A DNA stretch of 63,948 nt, the filler included, from Lenisia limosa (lineage: Eukaryota; Protista; Breviatea): NCBI GenBank assembly GCA_001655205.1. It is 11 parts of 11 records of this genome, joined end to end, with 100 filler letters (N's around TTAATTAATTAA, not from the genome) between each part and the next. Parts side by side here need not be neighbours in the genome. Positions count along the whole stretch, not along the records: positions 43,707 to 52,079 come from LPNZ01009223.1; 10 more parts are not named here. The stretch is one strand, 5' to 3'. A program made the translations under genes and the position numbers. The notes below the pieces were generated by a model. That model made no database searches. It was not told the DNA's origin and saw only the letters and a program-made list of their open reading frames with translations. Below are positions 613-52,189 of the stretch, one piece after another. The first letter of the stretch is position 1, and each line of letters opens with the position of its first letter.

Positions 613-3600
613 ATGGGCTCAGACGTATTTGTTCGTAAAGGACAATTTTTACGTTTGATAAAAGTCTTATCCTTGACATACACCTTCTTACTTTGGCAGG
701 AAGCAGGGACGTACGGAGGCACACTCTACGATATGGATACATCGCAAGTCTTTGGCGACTCTCCAGTGATCATGTCAACATGTGGAAATATTGCGGTAGC
801 TTTACACCGTAAGAAAAGGGATACAGAGGTGATCATTTATTCAACTCAGTTTGCCGAAGTATTTAAAGATTGATTACCTAATGATAAAACACTGGGGTAG
901 AAGTAGTTATCTTATTGAGCTGTTTCAAAACGTTTCATTTTCTGTCTTAATTTACCCCAGTGAATGGATCTGTTTCCTTTTTTGGATCTCAATATGGGTA
1001 CACACTACCTCGCCCGGATTTGAGCATTCTCAACTACAAGGTCATCAATCGCGTAATAGGGTCAACTTACCAAGGCAAAACAATTATGCTGTTCACAGGT
1101 ACGTGCTGGATTTACCCGCAATAATATCAAAACTGCCAACTTGAATTTAAATCCTAAAATTTGAGAATCATACATATTGTTTACACAGTGTAGTAGATGT
1201 GATATTATGGTACATAGTTCTTTCCATCTATTCCAAATATGAGTCTGTTCTTCGATGAATATCCTTTGTAGACAGGGCTTCTTACTTGATTGACACCAAC
1301 GAGTACACCGGCAAGTTTGGCATTTACACCGGAGTGTCGGACAAATGGAACATATTTGTGAGCTAAAAGCTTCTTCTGCTTGAGCTTTTTAGTCCATTCT
1401 TATTAATTTACCTCTGGTAATTAATTTTCCATAATATTACTTCATGTTCAAAATTACAGTTCCTAAAGTGGCACTTGTAACAATGTCATATTCATAGCGT
1501 CACTTCAAATTCAAAAATAATTTCTCATTATTTTCGCATGACCTACTTATCACCTATATCCTCAGGAGGTCCAAAAGTCAAAATTCGACAATGAGCGCCT
1601 TGTTCATGGAGCGTTTTATGGGAATGAGGCAATTATGTTGACAGGTGTGTGATACTTTTTCCGTGTTTTATTGTTTTCACTGTTAACAAATGTTGGTAAC
1701 AGCTTACTCTTTATGGTGATATGATTCAGATAAAAATGTCATGCGATTTAACCACTCAAGAAACTAACTCCATTTGGGTTACTACTAGAAGTGGGAGTGA
1801 TGTCAATTACTGCTGGGAAGCGGCTGTGAGCTATAAGTTCACCAAGATACCCAAGGTATAGGTCAAGTCATTAACACTTAATACACCTTATTATTACCAA
1901 GATGTTTCATGTCTGATTGTTTAAAATCCCAATCCCCTCTCCCACTTACAGACGGGGAGATAAAGGGTGCCTACCGTATGGTTTCTAATTCCATTTAGGA
2001 CTCGTATTCCTCAGTTTTGGACCCTTCAGATGAGATTGTCGACGTTTTCGTTACCACTAAATCCAGTCTTTTCTTAACAAGTAAGAGCTGCTGGTATTTC
2101 CCAGAGCAAATTATATCATATGATCATAACGTTAATGTCAATCTTGAAATGGACTACCTGATTAGTTGTTTGAAAGAGTTACTCAATGTATCCTTGAAGT
2201 AAATTTTATGTTAAATAAAATCGTTATACAGAGAAATCAATAAGGATAGATACCTTATGCTCTGCGCAGCACACACAATAGTGTCGACTCAAATTATTAT
2301 GAATGCTTTTACAATTGTCCATCAGTCATTGACCCTTTGCAGAGTTTGGGAAGGTTCTTGCGTGCGGCCCTGGGATCATTAAGGATGAGTCGTCGTGCTT
2401 CTTGGAGGTCACAACTGACCCCGCTAAAGCAACAGCATTCGGCTTCTTTATCCCTGAGTGGTTTATCGTAAGAGGGCAAGATCCTCATATATATACTTAG
2501 TTTTGTTCATTCGAACTGCAATGCAGGTATTATTTTTAAAATAAATATAATATATATATCATAGGCTGCTACTACGCATCCGCATCTCTCGGTTCTGTTT
2601 TATTGTGTTTGCTTTACCAAAAAAAATATAGTATATGTATTCTCGTACGACTTCTAGGCTCGTGTTCCCTTAACCTACCCGTATTACCACAGAACGACAA
2701 CCTTGCCCCCGATGACCGGGGCATAATAGGTTTTGACGGGTTGCGAATGGCCTACAGCGGCTTCCAAACTCCGGTCTTCAAATCGGGTAGGGATCGGCAT
2801 TGTAGACCACACACTCAATATAAGAGGATTTGTTAAGGAAAACAAAGACAAGCTACAGACGGCTGTCTTAAATACCCTTCATTCTGCTATATAGTTGCCA
2901 CATTGTTTCTCATACACCATTCCTTACTTCTTGATTCTATTCCTTACTAATTATGTAGCTAGTGGACGTGTTTTGCAGTGTTTCTCCGAGCAACTGCAGT
3001 ACCCTTCCTTCCCTGCATGGCGCACCTCAGTATGCGTCGTGTTTATATTAGACAACATCTTCTTCCTGAATCAAAAAACTGTCTTTTAATAATATAGATT
3101 ATATGGTATGCTATGCATATCGATATAGCATATTAGACATGAATTATTACATAATACATAAAAGTATTTTGTATAATCTACGATATCATATCATATGTAA
3201 TTAGATTATTTATGTTTGGTATTTTACGGATATTGTATATGACGTGTTTAAACAAATGTGAATACAGGGTTGTAACCGTCATACAAACACGTCTCACATT
3301 TCGTTGCATTTCAGTATGGCTGACCAATATATTTCAGCATCCCTTTGCGATATGACTTCCTGCTCTCACAATGTAGCGTTTTGAAAACATGTACTCGACC
3401 GTTCTTGATGGTTTGGACTTCCTTCCAAATAGATACCTTGCGGTCATGAGTGGGAGGGGCTGGAGCGTTCAGAAAACAGATAAGTATCTAATCACATCAT
3501 ATAGTTTCTTGAATTAAATATATCATTCAGATGGTATAAAGACTATATGATTCCCAAAATAACAATCCAAAAACCTCCCAGAACCAGTTAAAAAGATGTT

Positions 3601-6600
3601 ATTAAAGAGGTTAATTTCTGATAATGTATTCTGTGATCCTCATCCCCCAGATAAAAACGGAAGCAATCTTATTTACGACTTTGATTTTTTTCCCCAAGAA
3701 GCTTTGGAAGGTTTGTTGATATCATAACGGAATTTTCGTGTTGTTTTTCGTCGTCATCGATCTTCTTCACCTCCCCACCTTGCAACTCAACTCCCCTCTG
3801 ACCCGTCAGATACTTCGGTCCCCGTTACTATTGGCTTCAATGCCACTATTCTCGGCCACATTAAACTGTTCACTGCAGGTGTCATGAAGCTACATTGCAT
3901 GTACGCCTTTACCACAATTGTTATATCATCCACTTTTACAATGCAAAGAAACTGGAGAAGTTAAGGATTAGCATATCATTTATGCACTATCAAAACTTCC
4001 GTATCATATTGACTGAAGAAAAAGACTCCACTTGTTACTCACACCTTAGGTTTGATAACACTCCTTCACTCGCCAGAGTAAGTCCTAACGGGGAAATAAC
4101 CTGTGACCTTCCTCCCCAAACGTCTGACGTGACTAAGGTTGAACTTCTTTTCAAGGTTTGTCAAAGCAGCCCACTCTTTACGTTGGCATTGAAGAGAATC
4201 TACATACAGTACATATGATGTTACTCCAGTAAAAATCAAAGCAAATTCTAAGATAGATAGACATGGGACTTCACATCTGTTTTCAAACAACAGGAGTATA
4301 TTGATAAATATTTTGTATTAGTTTTGGCACTTTTATTGAACAAACACGTTTCTATATTTGACCCCCTAATCGCAATAGGGACGTAGAATCCGCCACATCA
4401 ATCCACGAGGATTCGCCATCAAAAGGATTGCCCACACCGTTGAACTGGATGACCTTAGTTTTTGGCCTGGTCGAAACGTCACAATAAAAGGAGGGGAATT
4501 TGTGGGTAATGTCACTGTTAATATGGTGGTGAGCGGCAAGTTTGATATCACTGCAAACGTGACTGTTGTCAATGCGACGCTTTTGGAGTTCACAGTTCCA
4601 AATGGCCTTCAAACCTACCCTGGACAGATGAGTGTAGTTTCCAAATTTGGGTAGGTAGGACTCTTTTTGTACTCCATGGATAGCGATAAAGACTTTTTTT
4701 GTCCAATATCGAGATTATTTTCACCTATTTATTTTTTTATGACCATTTAGAATGCCCTATTGTCCCGCGCAGAAAAATCGCATTTTCGCGGGATTTTCGC
4801 AGGAAAACAGTATTTTGGAGGATTTTTGCGGCGCTTCGCACCGCTCTGCACCATTTTATTTACCATTTTTTTTGTTGTTAAAATGTGAAACATCACCAGG
4901 TTTTGAATATTTTTTCGCTGCACGGGTAAATAGGGCATTTTTAAAATTAATATACATGTATATACTATATGCTGTCTGATTGCTGTTGGTTTTTTGTTAT
5001 TGATTTCCATTTACTTGTTCAGCGGAAATACCTATCAATCAGAAGACCTTTTGGTCAACTATTTTGAGGTTGGTGAAGCATTATTGGATACCATATATTG
5101 GGCTTGGGCTTCTCTTCGATCCCAAAAAGAATAAACTGCTCAATAAATGAGTATTTTTTCTTTGAGACAAATTAAAAGTAAATATTGGTTGAGTCAACCT
5201 TTCATCATTCAGCCTGCCTACATTACAGGCATCAACCCCGGGTCCATAGTGGCTAATGCGATTCCGGCGTACATCGATATTCAAGGAGCCAACTTCCCGA
5301 AAGCAAGCTCTATCGTTTGCTGTGTTCAAGGTGAGGTTTATCATTTGCTGGCTCATTTTATATGAAAAGGAGAAGTCTCGTAACTGCTGTTTATACATAT
5401 GTTTATTTGGTGGTTAGACCTTGTGCCTTGTTGAAAGCAAGAGTCATAAATCAAGGAATAACATGGGAGTAACTAAATCCTTTCCTCCAATGCCGACCAC
5501 TTAACCACGTATTGCAGAGTAATAAAGGGACTTGTCAACTCGCGAGCGGACTTTTTCCATAGCAAATCCGTAGCTCTCTGTAGAGAAATGCCATTTTCTA
5601 GTTCCAAGTACCCTTCACCCTTCATCTTCCAACGTTACCTTTATAGACAATTGTGCTGATGCTGAATACTTGAGCCAGGTGCTGGTCCTTTGCCCATTAC
5701 ACCCGTCACTTGCCTCTCTATGTTGGCTGCTGATATGACTGATATCTTTTTATACTTTTACATTGTCATATTTGCTGTATAGCGTCATCGAAAAATGAAA
5801 TTGCAATTCTGTTAGTGCTGGTCTATTTTACAAGGATAGTTATGTTTTATGGAATAAAAATTGTCGAAACAATGAAGTGTAAAAACAGTCACCAAACTCA
5901 ATTTAACATTTAAGATAATTGGTTATCGAGGATTGATTCGGAATTTTAGTTTTACACAACTAAATCAACTTTTTGACAACTTCATCTCCACAACAGTTTC
6001 CGCTGAAGTTACATTGACATTCGACAACACAGTGTTCCTTAAGTCTGACACGGTTTTGACCATCATAAGTTGGCAGGGAATCGGCTATAGCCCACATGAA
6101 TTACATGTAAAAATGTCCGTATAATATGTTTCCTTCCATTTTACCTTTTCTTTTATGAGGAGCTTATTACATCAAATCTCACTCATCGATGAAGTCTTTT
6201 GAATCTCCACTAAACCCCCAGGAACATTTACCCTGGAAGCGATTTCAACGTTTCCTTTACAATCGAGGAACTTTTGGCCGCTTGAGCCTCCTCCTCAGTT
6301 CAGAGTGGGCCGGTTTTGTGCTGTTTTATTGTCGATTGTGGTCAAAAGAGGCAAACAACCATTTTTGTCCCAGTTTTGGAGGAGCCATATCTCTAAAATT
6401 TATGTATTTGAAAACAGTTAGGTGATGTGATAAGTACACTATTATATATATATATAGTTAAAACCGCGAACATGATTAAAACCGCGAACAAAAAGGAGGC
6501 TTTTCTTTCAATTTTTGAGCCAATACGCTCCTTATTTACGCCTCTTTCGCATTTTTTGCAAATTATCGCCCGAAACACTCCTTTATACAGGGTTTTATTC

Positions 6601-9600: not shown

Positions 9601-12600
9601 TGTATTTGAACAAAGTGCACATAAAATATAGCAACCCCATCATCAAGTAATTTTTATACTCACCCCCAGGTGAGTGTGTGTGTTCCAAAGGAAAGTACCC
9701 TTCAAGTCTCACCTGCTTACCATGCCCTCGAGGTGCAATGGGGGCAAAAATCTTGTTTTTTGTTTTGTTTTTCAGAAAAGTCCTTGTGGAAGCAAGGATC
9801 ATTAATCCAATGTTTTTGTTAATATAAACTATCCTTTGTTGGTAAAAATAATAAGTATTCAGCTAACTCAATTTTGCTCACATCAATATCAAACTAAAAA
9901 ATGTTATTTCAAAGCTGAGTTCCCCCAAGTTCAATTCACCCTTGTTTTTGACAGTCATGTGGTTGCATAGCCTCAAAAATAATGGTTCACCCTTGTAGGA
10001 AGCTTCAAGACTGACGACAGTGATGGACTGTGCACGCTGTGTAGGGACGTGTACGGCGATCTTGCGTCCACAGTAGAAGACGGAGCAACTTCCATGGACG
10101 ACTGCGTGTATGCAAAGGGCTGTGATTCAAGGGGGGTCTGAAGAGAGAGCTAAACCAGTCACACAAGTACACTGTATATTTGAGCCCGCGGTAGTTTGTA
10201 ATCAATTTAGCTGTGAGTTTGGTATGGTGCTGGATCCAAGCGCAACAAATGCCACATGTGTGTGCCCCCCAGGATCGTATTACGACCCTAGTTCACCAAG
10301 TAAGCTATTATGCTGTAATCTACAAATTGAAATTGAATGCTGCCAACTCTATATGGTCATTAAATATGCCAATACAAGTCCATTCAAATAATTGAGAAAT
10401 TAAATTTAATATTTGAAGTGATACATATCATATTATAGCGAGAACTATGTTTTTTTTTTCTATTTTTCCAAAAAGATTATGCACGGAATCCTACTAATAA
10501 ATATGCTTAATGAACTTAACGACTTAAATGCAGCTAATAAAGCCACATCTATGAACTACACAATGTCGTTTCGAGTGTCCATTAATTTCTGTCCATCCAT
10601 CATCTTCGCAGCGCTGAAGTGTCAGCTGTGTGACTTCAATGGATTCCTTCCGACCTTCAGTCTTGCAACTGAATGCCACCCTTGTACTGAAAACAGCCAG
10701 ACAAGCCTACCAGGGAGTACTGATGGTGAGTGTCTTCATGGGCGTGGATGCTGAGATAATGAAGGTGATGGTAAGAAAATAAATAAAAGCTAATATTTTT
10801 GTAAACATACAGTACATACATTACATACAGATGTTTTCGAACATGGTCAATCAGTTTACTAAGGTACACATATTATTATGTATTTAAACTATGGGTTGAG
10901 TAGAGATAATGTGAGTGGTGCTTTTTTCTGGATAATAAGAGTAATGGTACGCATTTTTCCTTGATTAGGATTAGGGCTTCACTTTGGTTCGAAAAAATTT
11001 ATCAGTTTATTTTTTTTCGAACCAAAGTGAAGCGCTGGATAAACTCAATACGCAAGATACCTTTCTTTGTAGTTGAACAACTTGGGTTACCATGTCAATA
11101 TTATTTTTTTTATGAGTTACTTACCACTTCAAGCCTCGGATTGTCGCTGTTTATCGAATTTTGCGGCAGTTGAGGATGAATGCACTGCTTGTCCAACAGG
11201 TGGAATGTGCCCAGGTAAGGGGGTTTGCTGGGTGGTATGGGAGGGGTAAAAGAGATTTACGCCCAAAAAAGGGGCTTAAATGAGTTTTATCCTTGACCTG
11301 AAGGTTACAGAAAAAGGGGCCATAAAGAGAGAAGGAGGAGAGTGAATAGAGCATATTATGTATGATGGGGGGTATTCTTGATTTTTATGGTATATTTAAT
11401 GTGAGTTCTCAACCATTTAGGGGGTATTGCTGCCCCAGAAGCGAGCTCTGGTTTCTTCCCTCTTGATGAGGTAGGTAAAGATCATGAATATAAAAGTTAC
11501 TTTGGCGAAAGATTGGCATTGTCCTCTATTTTTTCTCTCCATCCTCCGCTGCAGCCACACACATACCTAACACTCCCCTCACAAAATTACCAGCTTTCCA
11601 CTAATCCTTAATCCCCCATTAATATCCTCGGGTACCCCCATTAGTATCCTCGGGTACCCCCATTAATATCACCGGGTACCCCCATAATATCCCCAGTCCA
11701 CGTCATTCGTGTCATGTCCGAACGCCGCCGCATGTATAGGGAGCGGCCACTGTGCCGACGGTTACGAGGGCTTCGTGTGCGGCGACTGCCAAACCGGGTG
11801 GGGGGTCATTTTCTCTGTGTTTTTTTCTTTGCTGTACCAGTCAACTGCCGGATATGTATGATCCTAGTTTCAACAGAGACTTTACTCTCTATGATACTAG
11901 TTTCAACAGAGACTTTACTCTCTATGGTCGTAGTTTCAATAGAGACTGTACTGAAACAAAGGGGGATAGAGTGTAGAGCTGTGGGGAGAAGTGATGGTAC
12001 AATTGGGCTATTGAGTATGGGGGGATGATGTAAGGAGGGTTATTACTCCTTTTGATCAACAGAATCCTGAGTGTATCCCATAATAATTACAACCCTTATT
12101 TCATTCTTTGGAGCAAGAAAACACTTTAAAGCAAAAAATATATATAATATAGCGATAATTTCCATATCCCCCGTACCGCTCTTCTCGTAATACCAGTTCT
12201 CATAGTACCCGTTATCATAGAACCAGTTATCATAAAACGAGTTCTCATTACACCAGATACTACCGCATAGAGAACGAGTGTCGTAAATGCCGAACATACT
12301 CCAACATTCTTCTCCCTCTTCTTGGAGTGATAGGTCAGTAGGTCTTCATGGATACGATGAAATGTCGATATTACATTGATTATTGATACTAATAATGCGA
12401 TTTATATTGAGGATTGATTAATTAATTGTTTGTTGCAATCTAAATCACTTGGGACTGCAAGGAGTTATTTGGGTGATAATATCAATGATTTATTGATAGG
12501 TGATTATTTTTCTATTATAGTACAAGTAATAGCAATGATAGATCGATATGTATTATATCATAAAACAAACATATGATATTCCTTATTTACCCCAAACAGT

Positions 12601-15600
12601 GGTTCTTGCGATTGCGATTATTTTTGTTTCATCACTCAATGCCTCAACTACGTCCAAGTTTGCCGCATTGAAAATCTTCGTTTCCTTTGCTCAGGTTAGA
12701 GGAATGACTTTGGCATGTTTTGGCTTTCTAGGACCTTTTAGTACACATTTATGTAATACATCATCTTTGCAGATCATATGAGACAAATCTAGCAATTAAC
12801 ATAGTATTGTCTATAGCTATATGATATGTACAATATGTCTAAGCTTCTACACAAATTAAATGCCATATTTTTAGTTATATTACATATCTTATGTATTTGG
12901 AGACATTGCTATAAATATAGACTATAAGATGTGAGTATTTTTCCCAAACAACTTTACTCAAGCAGGAGATAACCCGCAAAAATGCAATACGATCGATTAT
13001 ACCAATAAATTCAGTTTTGCGTTAGGTTTTGAAGACTTTGACAATAGAATGAAGACGGATTTGATTTATATGACATCTGAATCTAGCCCCTAACCTCCCA
13101 GGTGACCTCCATCTACTCCGGTATGGACCTCAACTGGCCTGCCGAAGTCAAGGCGGTTATGAACGTTATGGCCGCATTAAACTTCAACGTTCAGGTGGGC
13201 ATCATATATCATGAGATTGGAGGATTTATGTTCCCATATAACCACGATTACTTGTACAAAACATAGTGCTAAGACTTTTCCCAGAAACCATGATGATATT
13301 AATTTTCCATCATATTTGCCCCTGAGAATTGACGCATCAGGTGACATCACCTGAGTGTTCAATCCAAGGCCAACTAGGATTCCAGCACATGTTACTCATC
13401 ACGGTGAGATGAAGAGTAACTTTGATCTGTTTGCCATTCTTATGATTAGAAAAGATATGATATCGGTCTGTTTCTTTTGATCAGATTTCAAGGAATTAAT
13501 CCTTCCGTCATAACTAATACACTTGTCCAAGTTGTTGTAATTCATTGTGATATTTATTCTTTTTTACTCCCCCTGAATTTTAATGAGCCATTTAATATAG
13601 TCTTGCCAGAATAGCATTATATAATACCCCTGAACATTTCACTTGCAATAGTTACAGATATACTTGACATTTTTTTCACTTTGGTAATCAATTAAAAGAT
13701 TTTTACCCCTTTTAAATTTATCAAAAAAAACCCCAATTGTCAATCACGCATTCAGTTGGTTATGCCGATTGTGATGCTTCTAACTGTTGGCATTATCCAC
13801 ACGGTGATTAGGATCATTGCACAGCCCCCTCCAACTCAAGGCCTCAGTAGCAGTCAAATACTCAAGTGGGGCAGAGCATTTTACATATATCAGAGGATGA
13901 GTTTTGTACATATGTATTTAAAGGGTTATGTGTTTTATCTATGTTATTCACCTGTCATGCACTCCCATTCACCCTCCCCCCAGTGCTGCGGGAGTGCGGA
14001 CAGTGTGCACTTTGGCCATGCTGCTGTACCTGCCGCTGTGTTTCGCTGTTCTGCGCTACTTCGACTGCACAGACCAGGGCCATGGCGTATACACCCTGGA
14101 TGCGCGTGGGGGGGGGGTAATAGTATGCGCGTGGGGGGTACTCTTGATGTTTGTGGTGTTGTCAAGGGGGAGCCTCAATGATAAATAGATATTTTAGCGA
14201 TCTTAATTAGGTCATAGTGACGCCCTCGTCACACATTCAGAGCCCTCAATAGAATGCTGGCAATCCGAGCACCTGTCATGGCTTCCTTTGGCCTTAATCG
14301 GCGCATTGGTGTACGTCGCTGCTATCCCTCTTTTAGTCATGGCTCTTCTCATCAGCCGATCTGATGTGCTATATGAAGATGAAACAATGGCAAAGTTTGT
14401 CCCTTTTATATACAGTGTATTTAAATTCTTGAAACTTGGATATATGACTCATTGATAGAATGAGTATTGCATATTTTTAGCACATTTAATTAAGTATATA
14501 GTGATGCAAAGTGCTTACGCTACATTCTCTAATATATTTTGTTGACTACAGTGAAATATTCTTGTTCTTTTTTATACTTGACCTAAAGACATAAACTTGT
14601 CCTCACACTCTCACCCAACCAGATTTGGCGTGCTTTACACCCGATTTGTCCCATCAGGGCTCAGTCAGTTCTGGGAATGTGTTATTTTCCTGCGTTCCTT
14701 CCTCCTCGTTGCTACCCTGCTAATATTCGGGTCTAGACCTGAACTACAGGTTTGAGAGGGTGGGGTGGTGAGGTGGTTTGGGGGTGTTACTTGGGTTTGT
14801 AAAGGCATGGTATACCTTACATGGTCAATTTTATTGACATTTATCATGAATGTCCGCTATCATTAGCTCACATTTTCATTGACCGTTCAAGGCGTCACTA
14901 GCTGCGTTTGTGCTGGTCATTATTATGACGGTGCAACAATACACCAAGCCTTACATCACCAACCAATTCAATAAATTGGACTCTCTCGCATCTTTTGTAA
15001 GTTGGATTGTTTTTTCTTGTTTTATGAACAGAAATTACGGAAATGTCACTCAAACATACTTTGATATGCATATCTTTTAATTTAATTACCTCACCCACCA
15101 GGTTAAAAAAAACTCAAGCACTCACCATTTTTAGGTGAACATTATGACGATTGTCTGTGGGATGACCTTCTATCTCTACGCCACACATGGACACATTCGA
15201 ACGCTCTTCACGGTCATAGCACTTACAACGTTGACAGCCAATTGCATCGTGCTGGTGGCTTCAGTTGTAATGGAGTTGATAAGGTGAGTTTGGTTGTTTA
15301 AAGTGATGCTTCTGATGCTAGTTTTTTTTTCAGGCATATTTGAATATTGTTGTATATTTAAGAGCCTTATCCACTGTGAATTCCTTGTGTCTTACTTGAC
15401 GAAGACTACTGGCCTGGATTTTGTTTGGTATTTTATTATCAAGCCTTAATCAATGTTTTGCAAATGTTTAGCTGAGTTTGCTTTGTATATCATATTAATT
15501 GAAATTTATCCCCCCCTCCTGGTTGATCTGTCAAATGCCTCTTGGTGCATTTTTCTTATTGTTTTTTTGGCGGATTACAAGGAAGACTGTATTTTTGAAA

Positions 15601-43239: not shown

Positions 43240-43724
43240 GTTGGTTGGGTGATTTATTCTATCATCACTTTTTGGTCTTTTTAACTGTCATTTTCCACGC
43301 AATGATATGATACCTCATATCCCTCGTATGATAATTGACTGAAAAGTCTCAATGATACTCTGATACACTCGGGATAAACCCTCGAATAATCTGTAATGTT
43401 AATAAGCGTTTCTAGCATTTTTCGGGTTATTAGGGGGGGGGGGATCCCTTTTCAAACTCCGCTTTCATCTGGTTGGCGAATTTCGTGTTTTATTTGGCTG
43501 AAAAGGGGATATTACTGATCAACTTATAAAATAGAAAAATGCAACTTATCAGACACAAGAGGATATTGTCACTGGGTTTCTTTTATTCATTCGTCAAGAA
43601 GATATTNNNNNNNNNNNNNNNNNNNNNNNNNNNNNNNNNNNNNNNNNNNNTTAATTAATTAANNNNNNNNNNNNNNNNNNNNNNNNNNNNNNNNNNNNNN
43701 NNNNNNAAAATGTTCATTTGGCTT

Positions 43725-43790
43725 GTTTTCACAGATAGAGGAAAATTCACAGATATATGGACGGTGATAGAAATTTTTTTAAAAAAAATC
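43725..43790 (-). repeat. Family F repeat end
   Basis: Reverse complement of ccgtccatatatctgtgaattttcctctatctgtga, also at 46268-46335 and 48853-48912. Confidence 0.85.
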
Positions 43791-43819
43791 ACTTGATTTA
43801 ATTGATAATATCCTCCCAG

Positions 43820-43948
43820 TAGCTCGTCAGAACAAGGCTTCCCCCAAAAAGAAAGCTACCTCCCCCAAAAAAGCTACCAAAAGTATGTTACTTTGAAATG
43901 GTGTCGTTTTCTCATTTTGAATCGCCTGTCAAGAAGAAGGCAAAGTAG
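43820..43948 (+). CDS. Last exons of a protein with a histone-H1-like SPKK tail
   Basis: ARQNKASPKKKATSPKKATK, then KSPVKKKAK* if the 43883-43919 intron ends in TG. Confidence 0.6.
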
Positions 43949-44849
43949 CTTTTAGTCATCTTGTTTCCTTTTTTTCTTATGTTGTACATTATTCTATATT
44001 TTTTCCAGATTCCATTGCGTGAATGAGAAAATACCTCATATGGTTAAGTCCTATTCTGCTTTGTTGAGGGTAAATAATCTTAAACTGTTAATAGTGTATT
44101 TCTGTGCAGAGTTGATGTGTGTTGCAAGTATGATAATATTACTTTTGCTTTTCTTTCTTCATAAAACACTTGTGTGATATGTATATACCTTCAAAACTTG
44201 ACAACAAGGGTGCACTAGCCATAGAGAAGCCAACTTGAAGGATGAGAAGACGAAACTCATAAGCCAAGAGATAAGTAGTAAACTTGATTGAATACATACT
44301 GTTTTAACGGGATGCAAAAATCGATATAAGCAACTGATACAAGGGGAGACCAAAGTCGAAACGGTGGCTATACTTGACATCAGCATCAAGGAAAGGATTT
44401 GCGAGGGGAAGGAAACATCTAATTAACAACGATCAATCTGCAGACAATGTTTGAGTATCTATCTTGTTATATAGCCAGAAAAAAATACCATTTTGCTTGT
44501 AAAACAAACTGATTTTTAAAACTGAACTGGAGTGAACTGTGTCTCTTAGATTGTCTTAGAATACTTCTTTAAAAAACAGGAGGCTTGTCAGGACACTTTG
44601 ATTCAAATTTTTACTGAGATCTCCGAAATTTGTTCACTTTACTGCTCCCCCTCCTTCCTACCTTAATTATAATATCTTTTCCCTTAATCTACCCAAGCTA
44701 AACAGTGATTAAAAAAGAAAAATACAGAAAATTATTTCTTAAAACTGTCCACCGCAGGCCCTAAATCGTAGAAACTAAGTTACAAAATTTAATTGGACTT
44801 CCGCTTCTAGGTAAAGGTCAAAACGATCAATTCTTATCAATCCGAAAAG

Positions 44850-46240
44850 CCTTTGCAATGGGCACATGTGTCACTGGTAACAGAAATGAGAGATAATGAT
44901 GGAAGGGTAGCAAGTGTGAGACAATGGTTGAAGGAGTTTGAGAGCCGTCAGATGACAAACCAGGTTTGCTTTATCCCGTTGTGTTTTACCTCTTCTATTT
45001 TGCATCTTGTATACAGGGCTTCACTTCGGTTCAAAAAAAGACTGATTTTCTTGATAAATTCTCGAAAACTATCGATATTGTACTGGTCTTATTCGGACTG
45101 AAGGCCTTTGTATACTGTGCAGTAAATAACTAATCAGGTTTACCATTGTTGCTTGGTGTTATTTTTTAACATTATTTTCGCCTAAGCAAGGTCTAATTCA
45201 CAAGTCGTCAAGAAGCTAAAGATCATCAATTTGACTGATTCACTTATTGTTTCATGTCAGGGAGAAGAAGCAGGCTGCTGAGTAACTCAGCCGATTTCCC
45301 GTGGTGAGATGATCTGAGTCTCTGTGGACTCCCGCTGGTCGAATGTTTGGTGTCAAAAACTGAATGTCATGTGCCACTTTTCTAGAGATTTGGTTGGAAT
45401 TCAACTGATTCTCTCTACCATACTGGGAAAATGTTTGTTTGGATATAACGTGGCCTCAGCAGCTTTGGAACGTAGAATCTTCACTTATTTTTTCAAGTAT
45501 GATGATGGTTCTATCATAGTATGGAAAATGATTGTCCTCCAGGAGTTTGAATATTTGTTCGAATCAAATGGAAACTGGATCAGTCAGTATTCCGTAACCT
45601 GCATAGATGTCACTACTGGATTAAATGAAGGTTTGAAAGTGAAAAAATATATTATATTTTTGAGTGCGTTCGCCGTTGGTATCAATCTGGATGGTGCTAT
45701 CTTTCAACAGGTAATCAATCAACCAAGCTGATCATTCTACTAATTGTATTGTAAAAAGAGAGGGGGGGGGGGGAGAGAAAACACCTGTATTGCATGGGGG
45801 TAGTAGAATATATCTGGGGAGATCATCCTGTCAAGTATATTTGCAGGTTNNNNNNNNNNNNNNNNNNNNNNNNNNNNNNNNNNNNNNNNNNNNNNNNNNN
45901 NNNNNNNNNNNNNNNNNNNNNNNNNNNNNNNCAATCTCCCGCTCCTCGATTGACAAAAACACTTGATTGCGCTATTCAAAAGAATATCTTATTGTCAATG
46001 TGACCTGCACGGGCATTTTGGGTACAATCGTTCACGAAATTATACGGTTGCCGTGTGGCTTTTATATGTATGTTATGAATCTAAATCAGTTTCAAGATAA
46101 ATGTGTATCTGGTCGGCGATATATATGTGAGTCCTCAAATCTCCAAACATCATTCCAAATTCACCGGACACATCAAAACTCCCGGACAGCTTGAAGTTGA
46201 CACCTTGTAGAGGACAGATACAAGAGAAATGGACCTCCTA
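44850..46240 (+). CDS. Multi-exon gene of unknown function, possibly a beta-propeller
   Basis: Exons PLQWAHVSLVTEMRDNDGRVASVRQWLKEFESRQ; SNSQVVKKLKIINLTDSLIVSCQG; GSIIVWKMIVLQEF...YSVTCIDVTTG; AFAVGINLDGAIFQQ. Confidence 0.45.
45016..45106. mobile_element. MITE family A copy, intronic
   Basis: gggcttcacttcggttcaaaaaaagactgattttcttgataaattctcgaaaactatcgatattg. Confidence 0.85.
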
Positions 46241-46267
46241 ATGTTCCCCAACTTTTTTATTCCATTT

Positions 46268-46645
46268 TGAACATATCACACACCGTCCATATATCTGTGA
46301 ATTTTCCTCTATCTGTGATTTTTTTGAAATATACGGACAATTTTGATAAAAAAAATGGCATATATTAACTAAGAGAATTGTCATAACACTCTTGTTGCTC
46401 ACAAAAATGACAATNNNNNNNNNNNNNNNNNNNNNNNNNNNNNNNNNNNNNNNNNNNNNNNNNNNNNNNNNNNNNNNNNNNNNNNNNNNNNNNNNNNNNN
46501 NNNNNNNNNNNNNNNNNNNNNNNNNNNNNNNNNNNNNNNNNNNNNNNNNNNNNNNNNNNNNNNNNNNNNNNNNNNNNNNNNNNNNNNNNNNNNNNNNNNN
46601 NNNNNNNNNNNNNNNNNNNNNNNNNNNNNNNNNNNNNNNNNNNNN
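46268..46645 (+). repeat. Family F repeat (largely masked)
   Basis: aacatatcacac-accgtccatatatctgtgaattttcctctatctgtgattttttgaaata, followed by an N run. Confidence 0.75.
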
Positions 46646-46922
46646 TGTCAAAAATTCGTAAATTTGTTCTCCCGAAGGTCCCCCTCTTGCCTTTTCACAG
46701 GATTTTTAATTGAATCTTACCCTCTTTTTAGTCTTTTTTTTTCTCAAAAAGGGTGAATATCGTAAACAAAGAGATAAATTGCAGATTTGCTTGAGAAAAC
46801 CAGAATTAGCGAGAGAGAAAAAAAACCAGAATTTTGAACGGCCGCATATAGCAGATATATATGATATACTATATATACTATATATATCTACTTTTTCTGT
46901 AAATTCCACTGTCATGTTCTAG

Positions 46923-48823
46923 CTTGGATCAAGAGTTGTAGATTTTTCCTTGGGAGGTTCACTGAAAAGACGTTTTCCACTTAATAACTTAACACTCATG
47001 ACAACCTCAGGTGCAAAAGGATCCAAGGTTAATTTTTCTCAGGTACCATTTATTTCTCAATTTTTTTATTTTGATTTCTTGTCTTCTGGGTCAGCAAGAA
47101 CTGGAAGGTAGAAGAGTTCCTCGAATGGTAAACGGTAAAACTCTCCCTTGTTTTGAAGAGTATGACCTTGATGTGAGAGCTGGTGGGTTCATTGGTGACA
47201 GGTTCTTAAACAGTATATTTATTCCGATTTTTTTCAGGGGTGCGCCCCCAGGAGTACTACTTCCATTGCATGGCTGGTCGAGAAGGTTTAATTGATACTG
47301 CTGTTAAAACTGCTAATTCTGGTTACCTTCAAAGGTGTCTTATTAAAAATATGGAGGTGTGTATGCGTTTGATATTATTTTCTAGAGTCTTAGCGTCCAA
47401 TATGATGATACTGTTAGGGATGCAGATGGGTCTGTTATTCAATTCAGGTTTGTTCTGCGCTTCTTTTTTTTTTTTTGTGTTTACCAAATTCAGATATGGA
47501 GAAGACAGTATAGACGTAGTAAAATCCAGATGGCTGAAAGAATTCCACTTTCAGGCTTCTAATCTAGGGTCTGTTTCCACTAAGTATCAATTGGGACAGG
47601 TATTTTTCTTCTCTTGGGCTTCTGTCTCCGACTCTCTAGGTTAATGATTTAAAGAGATCCTCAAAATTATTAAAAGCTGGTCTAAGGAAACCTGAAAAGT
47701 ATCTCCCTGCTCTGTCACATTTAAATGTTTGATATATATATATATCATGTTGCCTTCTGGTCATATTGGAGCAGTATCCGAGCATTTTGCTTCTGCTTTG
47801 GACTTCTTCCTTCAAAGTGAATTTACTAATTATGGGTTTTTGTTTTGGTTTTTTTTTATGCAGCGAAACGTTTAGTCAAGAGGAATTTCGTTGGCTAATG
47901 TTTTCCAAGTATCACCAAAGCCTTGTACAGGCAGGTGAAGCTGTAGGACTGCTTGCTGCGCAATCAATTGGTGAACCTTCGACACAGATGACTCTGAATA
48001 GTTTTTTTTTTGTTTTATATAATCTGCGTTTCACCTTGCCGGATTTGGTGGTGTTAATGTTACCCTGGGAATTCCGCGTCTTCGGGAGATTCTAATGACT
48101 GGAGGAGAGAATCTCTCAACTCCTGTAATGACACTGCCGTTATTTAAATCGATATCAAAACATGATGTTTTTTTATTGTTGTTATTTTTTGGCGTCTTTA
48201 TTTTCTCGTAATCTCAAAAGGGTCTCCCTGTACAATGTAGTTGATCAAGTTTTTTCAAGTTCCCTAATTTGTGCTCGCTTGAAAAAAAAACAAATTTCAG
48301 TGAAATACTGTCAACGAAACGGTAATTTCTTCATTTATCTTGAATTTACATATTAATTGATATGATTCTTTTTGAGATATTAAATATCTTGATCTCTTTT
48401 CGCAAAAACACAACAAATTTTTGGTGTAATATATCATATGTTAGTCAGTGACCGTATTCAATAATGAGTACTTTATCGATATAGGCATATATGTTCATTT
48501 ATCATATACCCTCGGGAAAATGAGAGTCATATTTTTCGTTTTTGGGGAATGTGGCCTTTTAAACGGTTTGTGTGTTTTTGAGTAGAGTTGGTTTTGACCT
48601 GATTAGTTGCATTATGTTGAATTCTTTTTACGTAGCAACAAAACCTTACTTCTCCTTTTAGAAAGAATAGAAAAGAAACACTATAACTTAATTACGCCTT
48701 TACAATAGAAACTGAAACATCATATTGGACATCTTCTTGGCTCTGCTTCACTGAATTTTGTAGTAAGAAATGTTATTTTTCTGACGAATTTGCTTGAGAT
48801 CACCATTTCTCAAATTTCATCGG
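46923..48823 (+). CDS. POLR1A: RNA polymerase I largest subunit, central fragment (regions F-G); contains GT-TG introns
   Basis: Spliced: [162 protein letters not shown]. The GKTLP and [17 protein letters not shown] motifs match the Pol I type. Confidence 0.93.
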
Positions 48824-48852
48824 GTATAAGATAGCTCAATCCCCTCAGGAAC

Positions 48853-49290
48853 AACATATCACACCGTCCATATATCTGTGAATTTTCCTCTATCTGTGAT
48901 TTTTTTGAAATANNNNNNNNNNNNNNNNNNNNNNNNNNNNNNNNNNNNNNNNNNNNNNNNNNNNNNNNNNNNNNNNNNNNNNNNNNNNNNNNNNNNNNNN
49001 NNNNNNNNNNNNNNNNNNNNNNNNNNNNNNNNNNNNNNNNNNNNNNNNNNNNNNNNNNNNNNNNNNNNNNNNNNNNNNNNNNNNNNNNNNNNNNNNNNNN
49101 NNNNNNNNNNNNNNNNNNNNNNNNNNNNNNNNNNNNNNNNNNNNNNNNNNNNNNNNNNNNNNNNNNNNNNNNNNNNNNNNNNNNNNNNNNNNNNNNNNNN
49201 NNNNNNNNNNNNNNNNNNNTATATACCCTAATGAAAATGTCATATTTTTCTGGAAATTCGTCATATTCTTTCAAAACAACCATATTTTCA
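48853..49290 (+). repeat. Family F repeat (largely masked)
   Basis: Same 60-bp start as the 46268 copy, then an N run, then atataccctaatgaaaatgtcatattttt (motif also at 48503-48548 and 50068-50110). Confidence 0.75.
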
Positions 49291-49344
49291 AACAAATATC
49301 AGATTGTATGCTAATAACACGGGATAGGGGAGACAGGGGAGAGG

Positions 49345-49560
49345 GAACACTAGTTAGCCAACCTTCTTCTTCTTCAACTTGCTTTGAAACGTGTTCTTCT
49401 CTCATTAAATCGACAAAGAGGCCCTTGAGTGGGCGGTTGGCAACATTCAGGTATCACCAGGTTAGCTTGGCAATTCTTCATTTTATCATTAAAAGAACCT
49501 AATAAAGTCAAATAGAAGGTCAGCAGCTCAAACAAACTTTCGTCCAGAGCGATCACCCTT
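49345..49560 (-). CDS. Exons of an unknown gene, paralog 1 of an inverted pair
   Basis: GSFNDKMKNCQANL, 34-nt intron (49424-49457), then GLFVDLMREEHVSKQVEEEE. Confidence 0.5.
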
Positions 49561-49931
49561 CAAAACTCCTTGAACAAGGATTTTCTACTAAATAGCATAT
49601 AAGCATCCTTGAATCACTTAACAAGCGTTAAGCTTTGAAAAAAGGAGTGATTTTGTATTGGCAATTGTTTATTTAGCCTAACTTGTTACATTAGTTACAA
49701 AAAACAAATATGGGCGCACTTTTTCTTAAAGAAATGCGTCAAAACATCTCTAGAATATGCTGAAAAGATGCTTGGTAAGTAAAATTACGGTATACAGTTG
49801 CTCTTTGCAAGATCGGTATAGCTGGTGAAACCTAAACACCATNNNNNNNNNNNNNNNNNNNCATTTCCCTTAAACTATGACTTCCCATTTTCCGTCGGGT
49901 ATATATGATTGCTCATATTCCCTCTGCGCAG

Positions 49932-50500
49932 GCTTCTCGCGGAATGGCATTGGGCATTTTCTTGGTTGTTTTTGCGGAGGTTCCGAGGGACGAACGAGGC
50001 ATAGCCAAGTGAGAACCAAGGAACCTCCTTAAATCAATCGAAAATTTCCGAGGGATTATTGCATAACATATACCCTCGGGAAAATGAGAGTCATATTTTA
50101 CGTTTTGGGGTCTTTTTTTTTTTTTATCGCTCTGATCGAACTATTAGAAGCATTTACTGGACAAAGGGGATAAAGATGGTATTTGACCAAATTAGGTTCT
50201 TTTCATGATAAAATGAAGAATTGCCATGCTTACCTCGTGATGCCAACTCCCCTGAAAAGGGCCTCTTTGTTGATTTAATGAAAGAAGAATTTGTTTCAAC
50301 GCAAGTTGAAGAAGATCAGCTTTCGGAGAAAATTTCTTGTACCTGTGTTCCCTTCTTTTTCAAATAGTCAAATACGTTGCTTACATCGACAAAAGATAAA
50401 ACTAAGCGTCACCATGTCAGGTGCTTTGTTCATTTCTATGGTCCCTTAGGAAGGCCAGGAGGCGAGTTTTGGTAAACTATAATTTCCGTCCTCCAAAGCC
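49932..50500 (+). CDS. Exons of an unknown gene, paralog 2 of the inverted pair
   Basis: GSFHDKMKNCHAYL, 23-nt intron (50237-50259), then GLFVDLMKEEFVSTQVEED; upstream exon ASRGMALGIFLVVFAEVPRDERGIAK. Confidence 0.5.
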
Positions 50501-50972
50501 GCAATTGGGCGATTGTCAGTAGTTTTTTTTTTTTTTTTACCTCATTTGGCCATGAGCCATCACAGCACTGTGACTTTCACGATTTGATATATTCATATTA
50601 CATCACTGCAATACGAATGGTTCTGACCGAATAAAATAAGTAACCCCATACGACCCACCAAAAAGCTCTTCATATGAAGAGAAAGATTAAGTTTTCTATG
50701 TTCAGTGCCCCCGGGGGGCAATATGCACCAATCTCTTAAAAAAAAAATTATTCTTCTTGTTAACAAACAATCCAGATCTACTTTCGGACCTTGCTGGGTC
50801 TGAGGAGGCAAAAAAATCTGCTCACGGGCGTGCCAACTTAGTAGTAAAGGAAGTCTAGATTTCGAGACATACTAGCAAAAGGTGACAATGATGAGTATAA
50901 AAGCTAGATTGGGACATTTCAAATATTGTTGATTAGTAATAAAGTAATCAGTGCATATTATTTGTCCGACAA

Positions 50973-51955
50973 ATGGATAGAAGTACACCAGAAGAAGCGA
51001 TAAGGATGGAGACGAAAAGAATGGATGAAGATATGAGGATACTGTTGAAGAAGGTGAGGTTGATAAAAAGACTGAAGAAGAACGGAGGACGCACAGAAGA
51101 AGTGGCAGAAGATACGATGAAAGAAGATAATGAATGGATGAAGGAAGTAAGAAGAAGATGAATGAAGTAGGCATAGAAGGGACAGGAGACGTATTCCGCA
51201 TATTGGCAGGCATGGGAATGAAAGGTGAAGAAGCAATGAGGAAGTTGATGAAGAAAGCAATGAGAAGAAGATGGAAGAAGGCTGCAATTGAGAAGAAGTC
51301 GCTGAGAGAAGTGGTATGGATATGTGGAGGAAAAGAAGAGGAAGAGAAGAGTACCCGCAACTATTTGGAGAAAGAGAAGAAAGGAAGGAAGAAGATGAAG
51401 AACGAAAAGAGAGGGAGTTGAGGTTAAATGAAGAAGGAAGAAGGAAGAACGCAGAAGATAAAAGAAGATGCATGGTATGTGGAGTAGTAGGAGTAAGAGG
51501 TACTACTCACATACTGGAAGAATGCAAGGAAATGGAAGAAGAAAGAAGATGGATGGAAGAGAGAATATTGACCAGAATTGGAAGAGAAGTGAATGATTAT
51601 GATATGGCAAGAAGAAGGATGGACGAGGTTGTGAAGTGGAGAGGAGAAGAAGAGCTAAGAATAAGGACTAAAGGATGGTTTAAAGATAAGGAAAGAAGAA
51701 AAGAAGCAAGAAAGATGTATGCAAAGTGGAGGAAGAAAAGACAGAATGAAGAAGTATGGAAAAGAAGGCAGGAGGAGAAGAGAGAGTATCAAGATGAAGA
51801 TGAAGAGGAGGAGAATAGGAATATGGACGAAGAAAGAGAAGCAAGAGAAAGACGACAAGCTGAAGGAGAAGAAGAAGAAGGAGATTTTTTTTCTACCTCA
51901 ACTAGAATAAAATGAATCCAAAAAAAAGTCCAAAAAAAATAAAAATAAAATACAT
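50973..51955 (+). mobile_element. 5'-truncated, frameshifted non-LTR retrotransposon (ORF2 C-terminus with CCHC zinc knuckle)
   Basis: Intronless purine-rich reading frames: STPEEAIRMET...LKKVRLIKRL (typical post-RT motif) and CMVCG...TTHILEEC (C-x2-C...H-x4-C). Two frameshifts and an A-rich 3' tail. Confidence 0.75.
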
Positions 51956-52189
51956 AACGTTCGCAGGCTTCTCTGACCATCGAACAGGGAAAAATCAGTT
52001 TGTTCCAAGAGCCTATTGATTGCAAACTCTCTAAAAATCAAAAGTATAGTTGTATGGCAAAATTTTTAATAAGATTAGGNNNNNNNNNNNNNNNNNNNNN
52101 NNNNNNNNNNNNNNNNNNNNNNNTTAATTAATTAANNNNNNNNNNNNNNNNNNNNNNNNNNNNNNNNNNNNNNNNNNNNCAAACCAACC

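Follow-up and report, generated by a model that had tools for sequence, protein, structure and literature searches.

Apparent TG acceptors in ultra-short, T-rich introns of an RNA polymerase I largest-subunit gene fragment from the Lenisia limosa assembly

In the Mamiellales, the BOC1 intron class consists of many small AT-rich introns that lack recognizable signals and reside in the housekeeping genes of a region that is low in GC and bears transposons, with canonical introns elsewhere in the same genomes (PMC3491373). In the Micromonas BOC1, 34 introns with TG or CG acceptors have been described, most of them validated by expressed sequence tags, and two introner classes of this alga, IE-B and IE-D, are GT-TG (PMC3879977). 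TG 3' splice sites have also been reported in human U2-type introns (Szafranski et al. 2007, as cited in PMC3879977) and, according to papers cited via the same source, TG is the commonest non-AG acceptor in both the human and the Micromonas data. TG acceptors are rare, yet already described in some green algae, a published precedent that was missed when a first-pass annotation of the DNA analyzed here described them simply as rare exceptions. This DNA, hereafter the window, is a stretch of 63,948 nucleotides (nt), filler included, from the Lenisia limosa assembly GCA_001655205.1. It contains a fragment of RPA1, the gene for the largest subunit of RNA polymerase I, with nine short introns, four of which start with GT and appear to end in TG.

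Among the known systems, the BOC1 intron class of Mamiellales (Micromonas, Ostreococcus and Bathycoccus) is the closest match to the RPA1 introns. As in BOC1, the introns in the window are short (<75 nt), AT-rich (<43% GC), numerous within the gene and devoid of a branch motif, and they belong to a low-GC gene in a genome with ordinary introns elsewhere, although the likeness in this respect is based on one low-GC gene only. However, they are smaller than the BOC1 introns (25-46 nt as opposed to 40-65 nt), TG ends occur in 4 of the 9 introns of this RPA1 as opposed to 34 introns in all of Micromonas, and the GC content is far lower (35% at the locus, and 0.31 at third codon positions, GC3). 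Furthermore, the genomes of Mamiellales are compact, whereas the genome sampled in the window is rich in introns and repeats. With the human TG introns and with IE-B and IE-D, the introns in question would share the GT 5' end, the TG 3' end and the reliance on the major spliceosome for excision; however, the two introner classes are long repeated elements, from 100 nt to 6.5 kb, whereas the RPA1 introns are unique and tiny. The human TG sites studied by Szafranski and coworkers are reportedly rare, mostly alternative and close to an AG, whereas the introns in the window interrupt an essential gene and would need to be spliced constitutively. To our knowledge, constitutive non-AG acceptors at such a frequency occur only in special cases, e.g. 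in Fritillaria and in euglenids.

Another likeness is to the systems with ultra-short introns, namely Dicyema japonicum, the myxobolid Myxozoa, Paramecium, Stentor and the chlorarachniophyte nucleomorphs, in which introns of 15-30 nt combine reduced splice motifs with a presumed branch A close to the 3' end. In these systems, however, the shortening is genome-wide, whereas other genes in the genome analyzed here contain introns of 43-327 nt. The ultra-short introns of 15-30 nt were reported as GT-AG, by pipelines that assume GT-AG (PMC13644364, PMC6543705, PMC6736024). On account of such introns, D. japonicum (67.5 Mb, 36.7% GC, 49% repeats) and the myxobolids were weighed as possible sources of the sequence and rejected as unproven, given the ordinary intron lengths in the other genes.

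The part of the window that comes from LPNZ01009223.1 (positions 43707-52079) is a scaffold with four N gaps in which the RPA1 fragment, on the + strand at approximately 46923-48321, is the sole recognizable gene. The first-pass annotation had assigned this gene to RPA1 with intact exons, and the assignment was borne out by comparison with the RPA1/RPA190 chains in the PDB, by tblastn with four full-length homologues and by a profile constructed from 29 full-length RPA1 proteins. Only the profile positions 858-1225 are covered, i.e. ~370 of the ~1650 residues of RPA1. Removal of the nine introns (four GT-TG and five GT-AG) yields a stop-free RPA1 segment of ~350 residues that is collinear with the homologues, scores 573.8 bits on the profile and aligns with residues 905-1260 of Geosiphon RPA1 end to end, without large gaps (56.6% identity, 349 versus 356 residues). 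There are no stops and no frameshifts across ~1.1 kb of exons, and every invariant motif is retained, including that of the trigger loop. Given that the frames and motifs are intact despite a GC3 of 0.31 in the exons and a GC content of ~35% across the locus, the sequence argues for purifying selection acting on this segment. The affinities of the fragment are mixed: over long stretches, early fungi and aphelids match best, single exons are matched best by chlorophytes, e.g. a contig from GCA_011766145.1, and two RPA1 trees were unstable, with the long branch of the window RPA1 placed in the green lineage in one and near fungi in the other.

Table 1. Exons and introns of the RPA1 fragment and the adjacent copies of a miniature inverted-repeat transposable element (MITE), in window positions
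Feature	Position	Strand	Basis or remark
MITE copy in upstream intron or flank	46270-46645		spans scaffold gap 46415-46645
RPA1 exon	46923-47042	+	profile positions 858-897; tblastn with four homologues; TAG acceptor before, 46920-46922
Intron 1, 31 nt, GT..TG, phase 0, no AG	47043-47073	+	best canonical alternative -36 bits
RPA1 exon	47074-47212	+	PDB RPA1/RPA190 chains, E about 1e-13
Intron 2, 25 nt, GT-AG, phase 1	47213-47237	+	
RPA1 exon	47238-47356	+	tblastn and profile
Intron 3, 29 nt, GT-AG	47357-47385	+	
RPA1 exon	47386-47447	+	tblastn and profile
Intron 4, 46 nt, GT-AG	47448-47493	+	
RPA1 exon	47494-47599	+	tblastn and profile
Intron 5, 40 nt, GT-AG	47600-47639	+	
RPA1 exon, weakly conserved stretch	47640-47726	+	alignment with Geosiphon RPA1
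Intron 6, 26 nt, GT..TG, no AG, least certain TG intron	47727-47752	+	
RPA1 exon	47753-47835	+	profile match 1072-1097
Intron 7, 28 nt, GT-AG; in-frame TG also 3 nt upstream	47836-47863	+	
RPA1 exon; 3' end is the invariant MTLN stretch plus the first base of the Thr codon	47864-48000	+	tblastn, profile, homologues
Intron 8, 26 nt, GT..TG, phase 1, no AG	48001-48026	+	boundary unique to the nucleotide
RPA1 exon, trigger-loop region	48027-48166	+	tblastn and profile
Intron 9, 25 nt, GT..TG, no AG	48167-48191	+	best canonical alternative -17 bits
RPA1 exon, 3' end not fixed	48192-48321	+	profile match to ~48275; candidate donor GTAATT at 48322
MITE copy end	48853-48912		contig end before gap 48913-49219

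All nine introns, which are packed within ~1.4 kb, start with GT, and none contains an internal AG; the 3' end is TG in four introns and AG in five (Table 1). For the four TG introns, the coordinates, the lengths, none of which is divisible by 3, the GT starts, the TG ends and the absence of AG are as originally noted. The accompanying count of at least six other GT-AG introns, however, has to be lowered to five complete ones, to which an upstream acceptor AG (46921-22) and a candidate downstream donor GT (48322) can be added. The T content of the individual introns ranges from 47 to 76% (59% overall), and the pooled GC content is 26%, with intron 5 reaching 45%. In all nine introns, the last A precedes the 3' junction by 4-10 nt. 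The junction itself follows the first G after this A in seven introns and the second G in two; TG dinucleotides that occur further upstream are passed over, e.g. at position 29 of intron 4. No consensus branch motif was found in the nine introns. Of the hallmarks of U2-type introns, the pyrimidine-rich 3' part and a candidate branch A near the 3' end are present, and the AG at the 3' end is lacking in four of the nine. In intron 4, a 7-nt direct repeat, AATTCAG, occurs immediately before the donor and again as the last 7 nt of the intron (47441-47493), such that the borders of this intron can slide by up to 7 nt, leaving the mRNA unchanged.

For each of the TG introns, all frame-keeping, stop-free GT/GC-AG introns between the neighboring introns were listed, and the respective products were scored on the profile. 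Judging from these sequence comparisons, intron 8 is the decisive case. In nearly all of ~120 homologues, TFH follows MTLN, and the Thr codon of MTLN-T-FH has to be assembled from an A before the intron and a CG after it, so that no shift of the boundary is possible; the best canonical substitute costs 71 bits, and no AG is reached until 62 nt downstream, where it is out of frame. For intron 1, the best canonical substitute costs 36 bits and removes the conserved ISCLLGQ, and for intron 9, the cost is 17 bits; the boundaries of both these introns could be displaced by 1 nt, giving GG..TT or TT..GG. Splicing at the nearest AG downstream would break the frame in intron 9 as in intron 8. Intron 6 has an in-frame TG also 3 nt upstream of its assigned end. 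Thus, the proposition that the conserved protein is restored only by splicing at a TG appears to be strong for introns 1 and 8 and moderate for intron 9, but weak for intron 6, for which a low-cost alternative exists; in other words, the requirement for a TG acceptor seems well supported for three introns and plausible for the fourth. A specific requirement for T at position -2 is another matter: with introns that are 59% T, composition alone would place T at this position in four of four non-A cases with a probability of ~0.23, and therefore such a requirement is not demonstrated.

The positions of introns 1, 2 and 8 were compared with those in other eukaryotes. Introns 1 (TG) and 2 (AG) coincide in position and phase with canonical introns (GT-AG) of L002 and L008, which are GC-rich and chlorophyte-like contigs; this implies that intron 1 is an old spliceosomal intron with a changed acceptor. 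In an RPA1 sequence from a JGI metagenome (L003, GC 43%), a phase-2 GT-AG intron (10285-10345) interrupts the Thr codon after MTLN, one nucleotide away from intron 8 of the window, a TG intron in phase 1. Either a shared intron slid by one base, or the two introns were gained independently at a hotspot.

At the DNA level, the SPAdes contig NODE_3418 (L001) of the ENA assembly ERZ3820729 is 100% identical to the window over 46646-48907, and the contig set of run X1 contains all sampled words (share 1.00), with the proviso that the window, L001 and X1 may all derive from one read set. A run of T precedes the TG end in only one or two of the four TG introns, and accordingly, homopolymer miscalls are no explanation. 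No second RPA1 copy was found in the same sample, in a search that was not exhaustive, and the best single-exon relatives come from other samples or organisms; the nearest RPA1 relatives in the collections are at 57% for long open reading frames (ORFs) and at 78-82% for single exons (other samples and organisms). A scan of JGI metagenomes for the junction of exons 8 and 9 with a gap of 0-30 nt was blank.

The contig coverage of NODE_3418 is 84, compared to 31-35 for NODE_11, NODE_304 and NODE_1650 of the same assembly. This excess may be due to inflation by high-copy MITE parts or to a real difference in copy number or compartment.

The MITE family that flanks RPA1 is ~450 bp long, with terminal inverted repeats of ~45 nt (CACCGTCCATATATCTGTGAATTTTCCTCTATCTGTGA), and an ORF inside this element led to three further contigs of ERZ3820729 (L004, L005 and L006). 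Copies of the MITE are located in the window at 43707-43777, 46270-46645 and 48853-48912, in L001 at 2478-2930 (the full copy), in L004 at 3007-3446, in L005 at 10319-10447 and in L006 at 5432-5840. Because L004-L006 share the MITE of the RPA1 locus (85-95% identity, up to 445 nt) and, in addition, a second short repeat with L001, these contigs come from the same genome or a very close relative. Stop-free models were obtained for a TM9SF/EMP70 gene (9 introns, 53-259 nt), in which the order of exons was checked against Pfam profile positions, for an SLC45-like transporter gene (10 introns, 43-224 nt), and for a CZIB/DUF866 gene (2 introns, 308 and 327 nt). All 21 introns in these three genes are GT-AG, with lengths of 43-327 nt (the loci contrasted are window 46923-48321 versus L004 10216-12469, L005 11017-12805 and L006 7958-8679). 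The frequencies of TG acceptors, 4/9 in RPA1 versus 0/21 in the three other genes, yield a Fisher p = 0.0046. Hence TG acceptors are not a routine property of this spliceosome, and the first-pass suggestion of a relaxed -2 position that is used routinely is not supported. The genes differ in composition as well: GC3 is 0.73-0.80 in TM9SF and 0.48-0.70 in the SLC45-like transporter as opposed to 0.31 in RPA1, and the GC content of the L004-L006 contigs is 39-43.5% as opposed to ~35% at the RPA1 locus; the TM9SF intron donors are GTAGG or GTGAG. The TG acceptors are thus associated with introns that are ultra-short and T-rich and belong to a low-GC gene. Both composition and intron architecture are strongly heterogeneous within one genome, a dual architecture like that of BOC1.

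Several introns in the other genes end in 10-14 C followed by AG (L006 7958-8000 and 8353-8480; L005 11590-11604; L004 ~12600-12625, - strand). The C-run 3' ends of both CZIB introns lie inside copies of one short repeat (..AGGCTTTTTTGTTTCA..), a hint that intron 3' ends may be carried by repeats in an introner-like manner. L004-L006 contain many poly-G/C runs of 10-14 nt, which could be real or artefacts of two-color chemistry.

We consider it probable that the introns described here are real U2-dependent introns of a functional RPA1, located where a compositionally mixed genome is low in GC and rich in transposons, and that the second step of splicing takes the nearest G. The use of the TG junctions in the mRNA and the mechanism as a whole we infer from the sequence. 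Under this model, the RPA1 introns would have shrunk to 25-46 nt, mostly T, with the last A, the likely branch point, only 4-10 nt away from the 3' junction. At such a short distance, the second catalytic step would take the nearest G, and U would be tolerated at -2 since it could still contact the branch adenosine. Given such tolerance, a change from AG to TG would be survivable in these introns and could have become fixed in four of the nine. In structures of the post-catalytic spliceosome, the A at position -2 of the 3' splice site pairs with the branch adenosine, and in yeast, prp8 alleles suppress UAG-to-UUG 3' splice sites; by analogy, these observations would offer a route for U at -2 in the second step. 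A broader proposal, which we put forward tentatively, is that this organism, outside the Mamiellales, has two splicing regimes, one with GT-AG introns of 40-330 nt in GC-richer genes, and the other, in a low-GC compartment, with T-rich introns of 25-31 nt in which the 3' end would be set by the distance from the branch point, at the first G that follows it, ~40% of them without AG.

Several observations weigh against the reading of the TG introns as functional. The entire case is built on one gene fragment; neither tblastn nor the 29-protein profile gave an RPA1 match in the flanks (3.2 kb upstream, 3.7 kb downstream), and three MITE copies are found within 8 kb around RPA1, bounding the segment on both sides. 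For intron 6, a 20-nt A-rich GT-AG intron at 47680-47699 would cost only 9 bits. No transcript-derived protein of this organism was detected in large protein collections in HMMER searches with exon 2, with a five-exon profile and with exon 8; the only matches at 100% identity were to the genomic ORFs P0001 and P0282. In the polyA 'metatranscriptomic' RNA run X2, 0.52 of the sampled words are present, compared to an expected share of 31-mers of 0.566 with the nine introns out, 0.72 with the TG introns retained and 0.94 for the unspliced sequence. This share fits full splicing and to that extent speaks for the TG junctions, but it would also fit retention of the TG introns at a coverage of ~72%.

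These observations have to be considered along with four other explanations of the data. The presence of ~370 of the ~1650 residues in a fragment bounded by MITEs, with a GC3 of 0.31 and an intron style sharply unlike those of the three other genes, would be compatible with a silent, decaying partial copy of RPA1, in which the TG ends are broken acceptors and a working gene with ordinary introns exists elsewhere. We regard this as unlikely because the exons, across ~1.1 kb, contain neither stops nor frameshifts and preserve the invariant motifs, whereas a drift of GC3 from ~0.7 to 0.31 in the absence of selection would have destroyed the frame. Moreover, a change of four acceptor A's that leaves the coding frame untouched is unlike neutral decay, the word share in the polyA RNA run is close to the exonic share, none of the RPA1 relatives in the collections exceeds 57% (long ORFs) or 78-82% (single exons), and breaks in the contigs at MITE copies account for the absent exons. 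The original argument that random error or decay would not hit the same -2 base four times while leaving the exons intact therefore retains its force with regard to the exons but is weakened with regard to the repeated base, given the probability of ~0.23 expected from composition. It also appears improbable that the TG junctions are unused and that splicing proceeds at the next downstream AG or at other sites, to produce variant or nonsense transcripts. Such splicing is conceivable for introns 1 and 6, where use of the next AG results in in-frame deletions of 7 and 10 residues, respectively, and for intron 6 in the form of the 20-nt GT-AG alternative at 9 bits; however, splicing at the next AG would throw introns 8 and 9 out of frame, the deletion in intron 1 takes away the conserved ISCLLGQ at 36 bits, and all stop-free canonical options for intron 8 lose or replace the essential TFHLAG..GIPRLRE, at a cost of at least 71 bits.

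A possible, if doubtful, alternative concerns the rule at the acceptor: any base would be accepted at -2, what counts being solely the G at -1 that first follows the branch A, and T would predominate because the introns are 59% T. In this connection, no more than one other G stands between the last A and the acceptor G in any of the nine introns, four T out of four non-A bases have a probability of 0.23, and the Micromonas BOC1 introns use CG besides TG; on the other hand, TG is the commonest non-AG acceptor in the human and Micromonas data, as far as these are represented in the papers cited via PMC3879977, and four cases cannot separate the two rules. By far the least credible explanation is an error in sequencing or assembly, removal at the DNA level as in ciliates, or non-spliceosomal excision of the IRE1/XBP1 or euglenid type. 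The 26-nt size does resemble that of the XBP1 intron and the smallest segments eliminated in ciliates, but two assemblies agree, the X1 contig set contains all sampled words, and a T run precedes the TG in no more than one or two of the four cases. Furthermore, the borders carry neither pointer nor TA repeats, CNGCNGN and U12 motifs are absent from them, and all four segments start with GT as do their GT-AG neighbors.

The specific classes of intervening sequences that were tried and rejected are as follows. For U12-type introns, neither [AG]TATCCTT nor the branch site TCCTTAAC was found at any intron border, and the single [AG]TATCC, at 47774, is exonic. For the internal eliminated sequences of ciliates, the border repeats at the TG introns are 0-1 nt, and the segments are present in all assemblies. 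IRE1-type introns (XBP1/HAC1), with their CNG/CNGN cleavage motif in each of two stem-loops, were rejected given that CNGCNGN occurs only at 47298 and 48134, both exonic and at no intron border. Euglenid-type introns, stwintrons and homopolymer miscalls were likewise rejected from the sequence.

Around the locus, the scaffold gaps and contig ends coincide with MITE copies, and hence the flanking joins are unreliable; the remaining RPA1 exons probably lie beyond the MITE copies. A scan of JGI metagenomes for the MITE core was blank. Additional elements are present nearby. An AT-repeat occupies 46853-46894. A foldback element at window 49368-50315 consists of inverted arms of ~145 nt (83-88% complementary) that are ~665 nt apart, and a 47-nt repeat is common to 48500-48546 and 50064-50110. 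At 51316-51915 (+), there is an ORF for 199 residues that is rich in Glu, Lys and Arg and includes a CxxC..HxxxC-like stretch, without a Pfam hit. The ESM Atlas contains the same sequence from residue 53, which indicates that this ORF was called as a gene in an MGnify assembly; it could be low-complexity or transposon-related.

If the TG junctions are true, an essential gene depends on four constitutive non-AG acceptors, and the same genome provides an internal control in the form of other genes that use AG only. The question then becomes what licenses the skipping of AG, whether intron length, the distance from the branch point to the 3' end, or T-richness. Should the tentative proposal of two splicing regimes hold as well, the BOC1-like dual architecture would be either convergent or much more widespread, and this organism would provide a natural example of essential genes whose constitutive splicing can do without AG recognition. 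Gene finders that accept only GT-AG introns break or lose such genes, and the low-GC compartments of such genomes are probably under-annotated.

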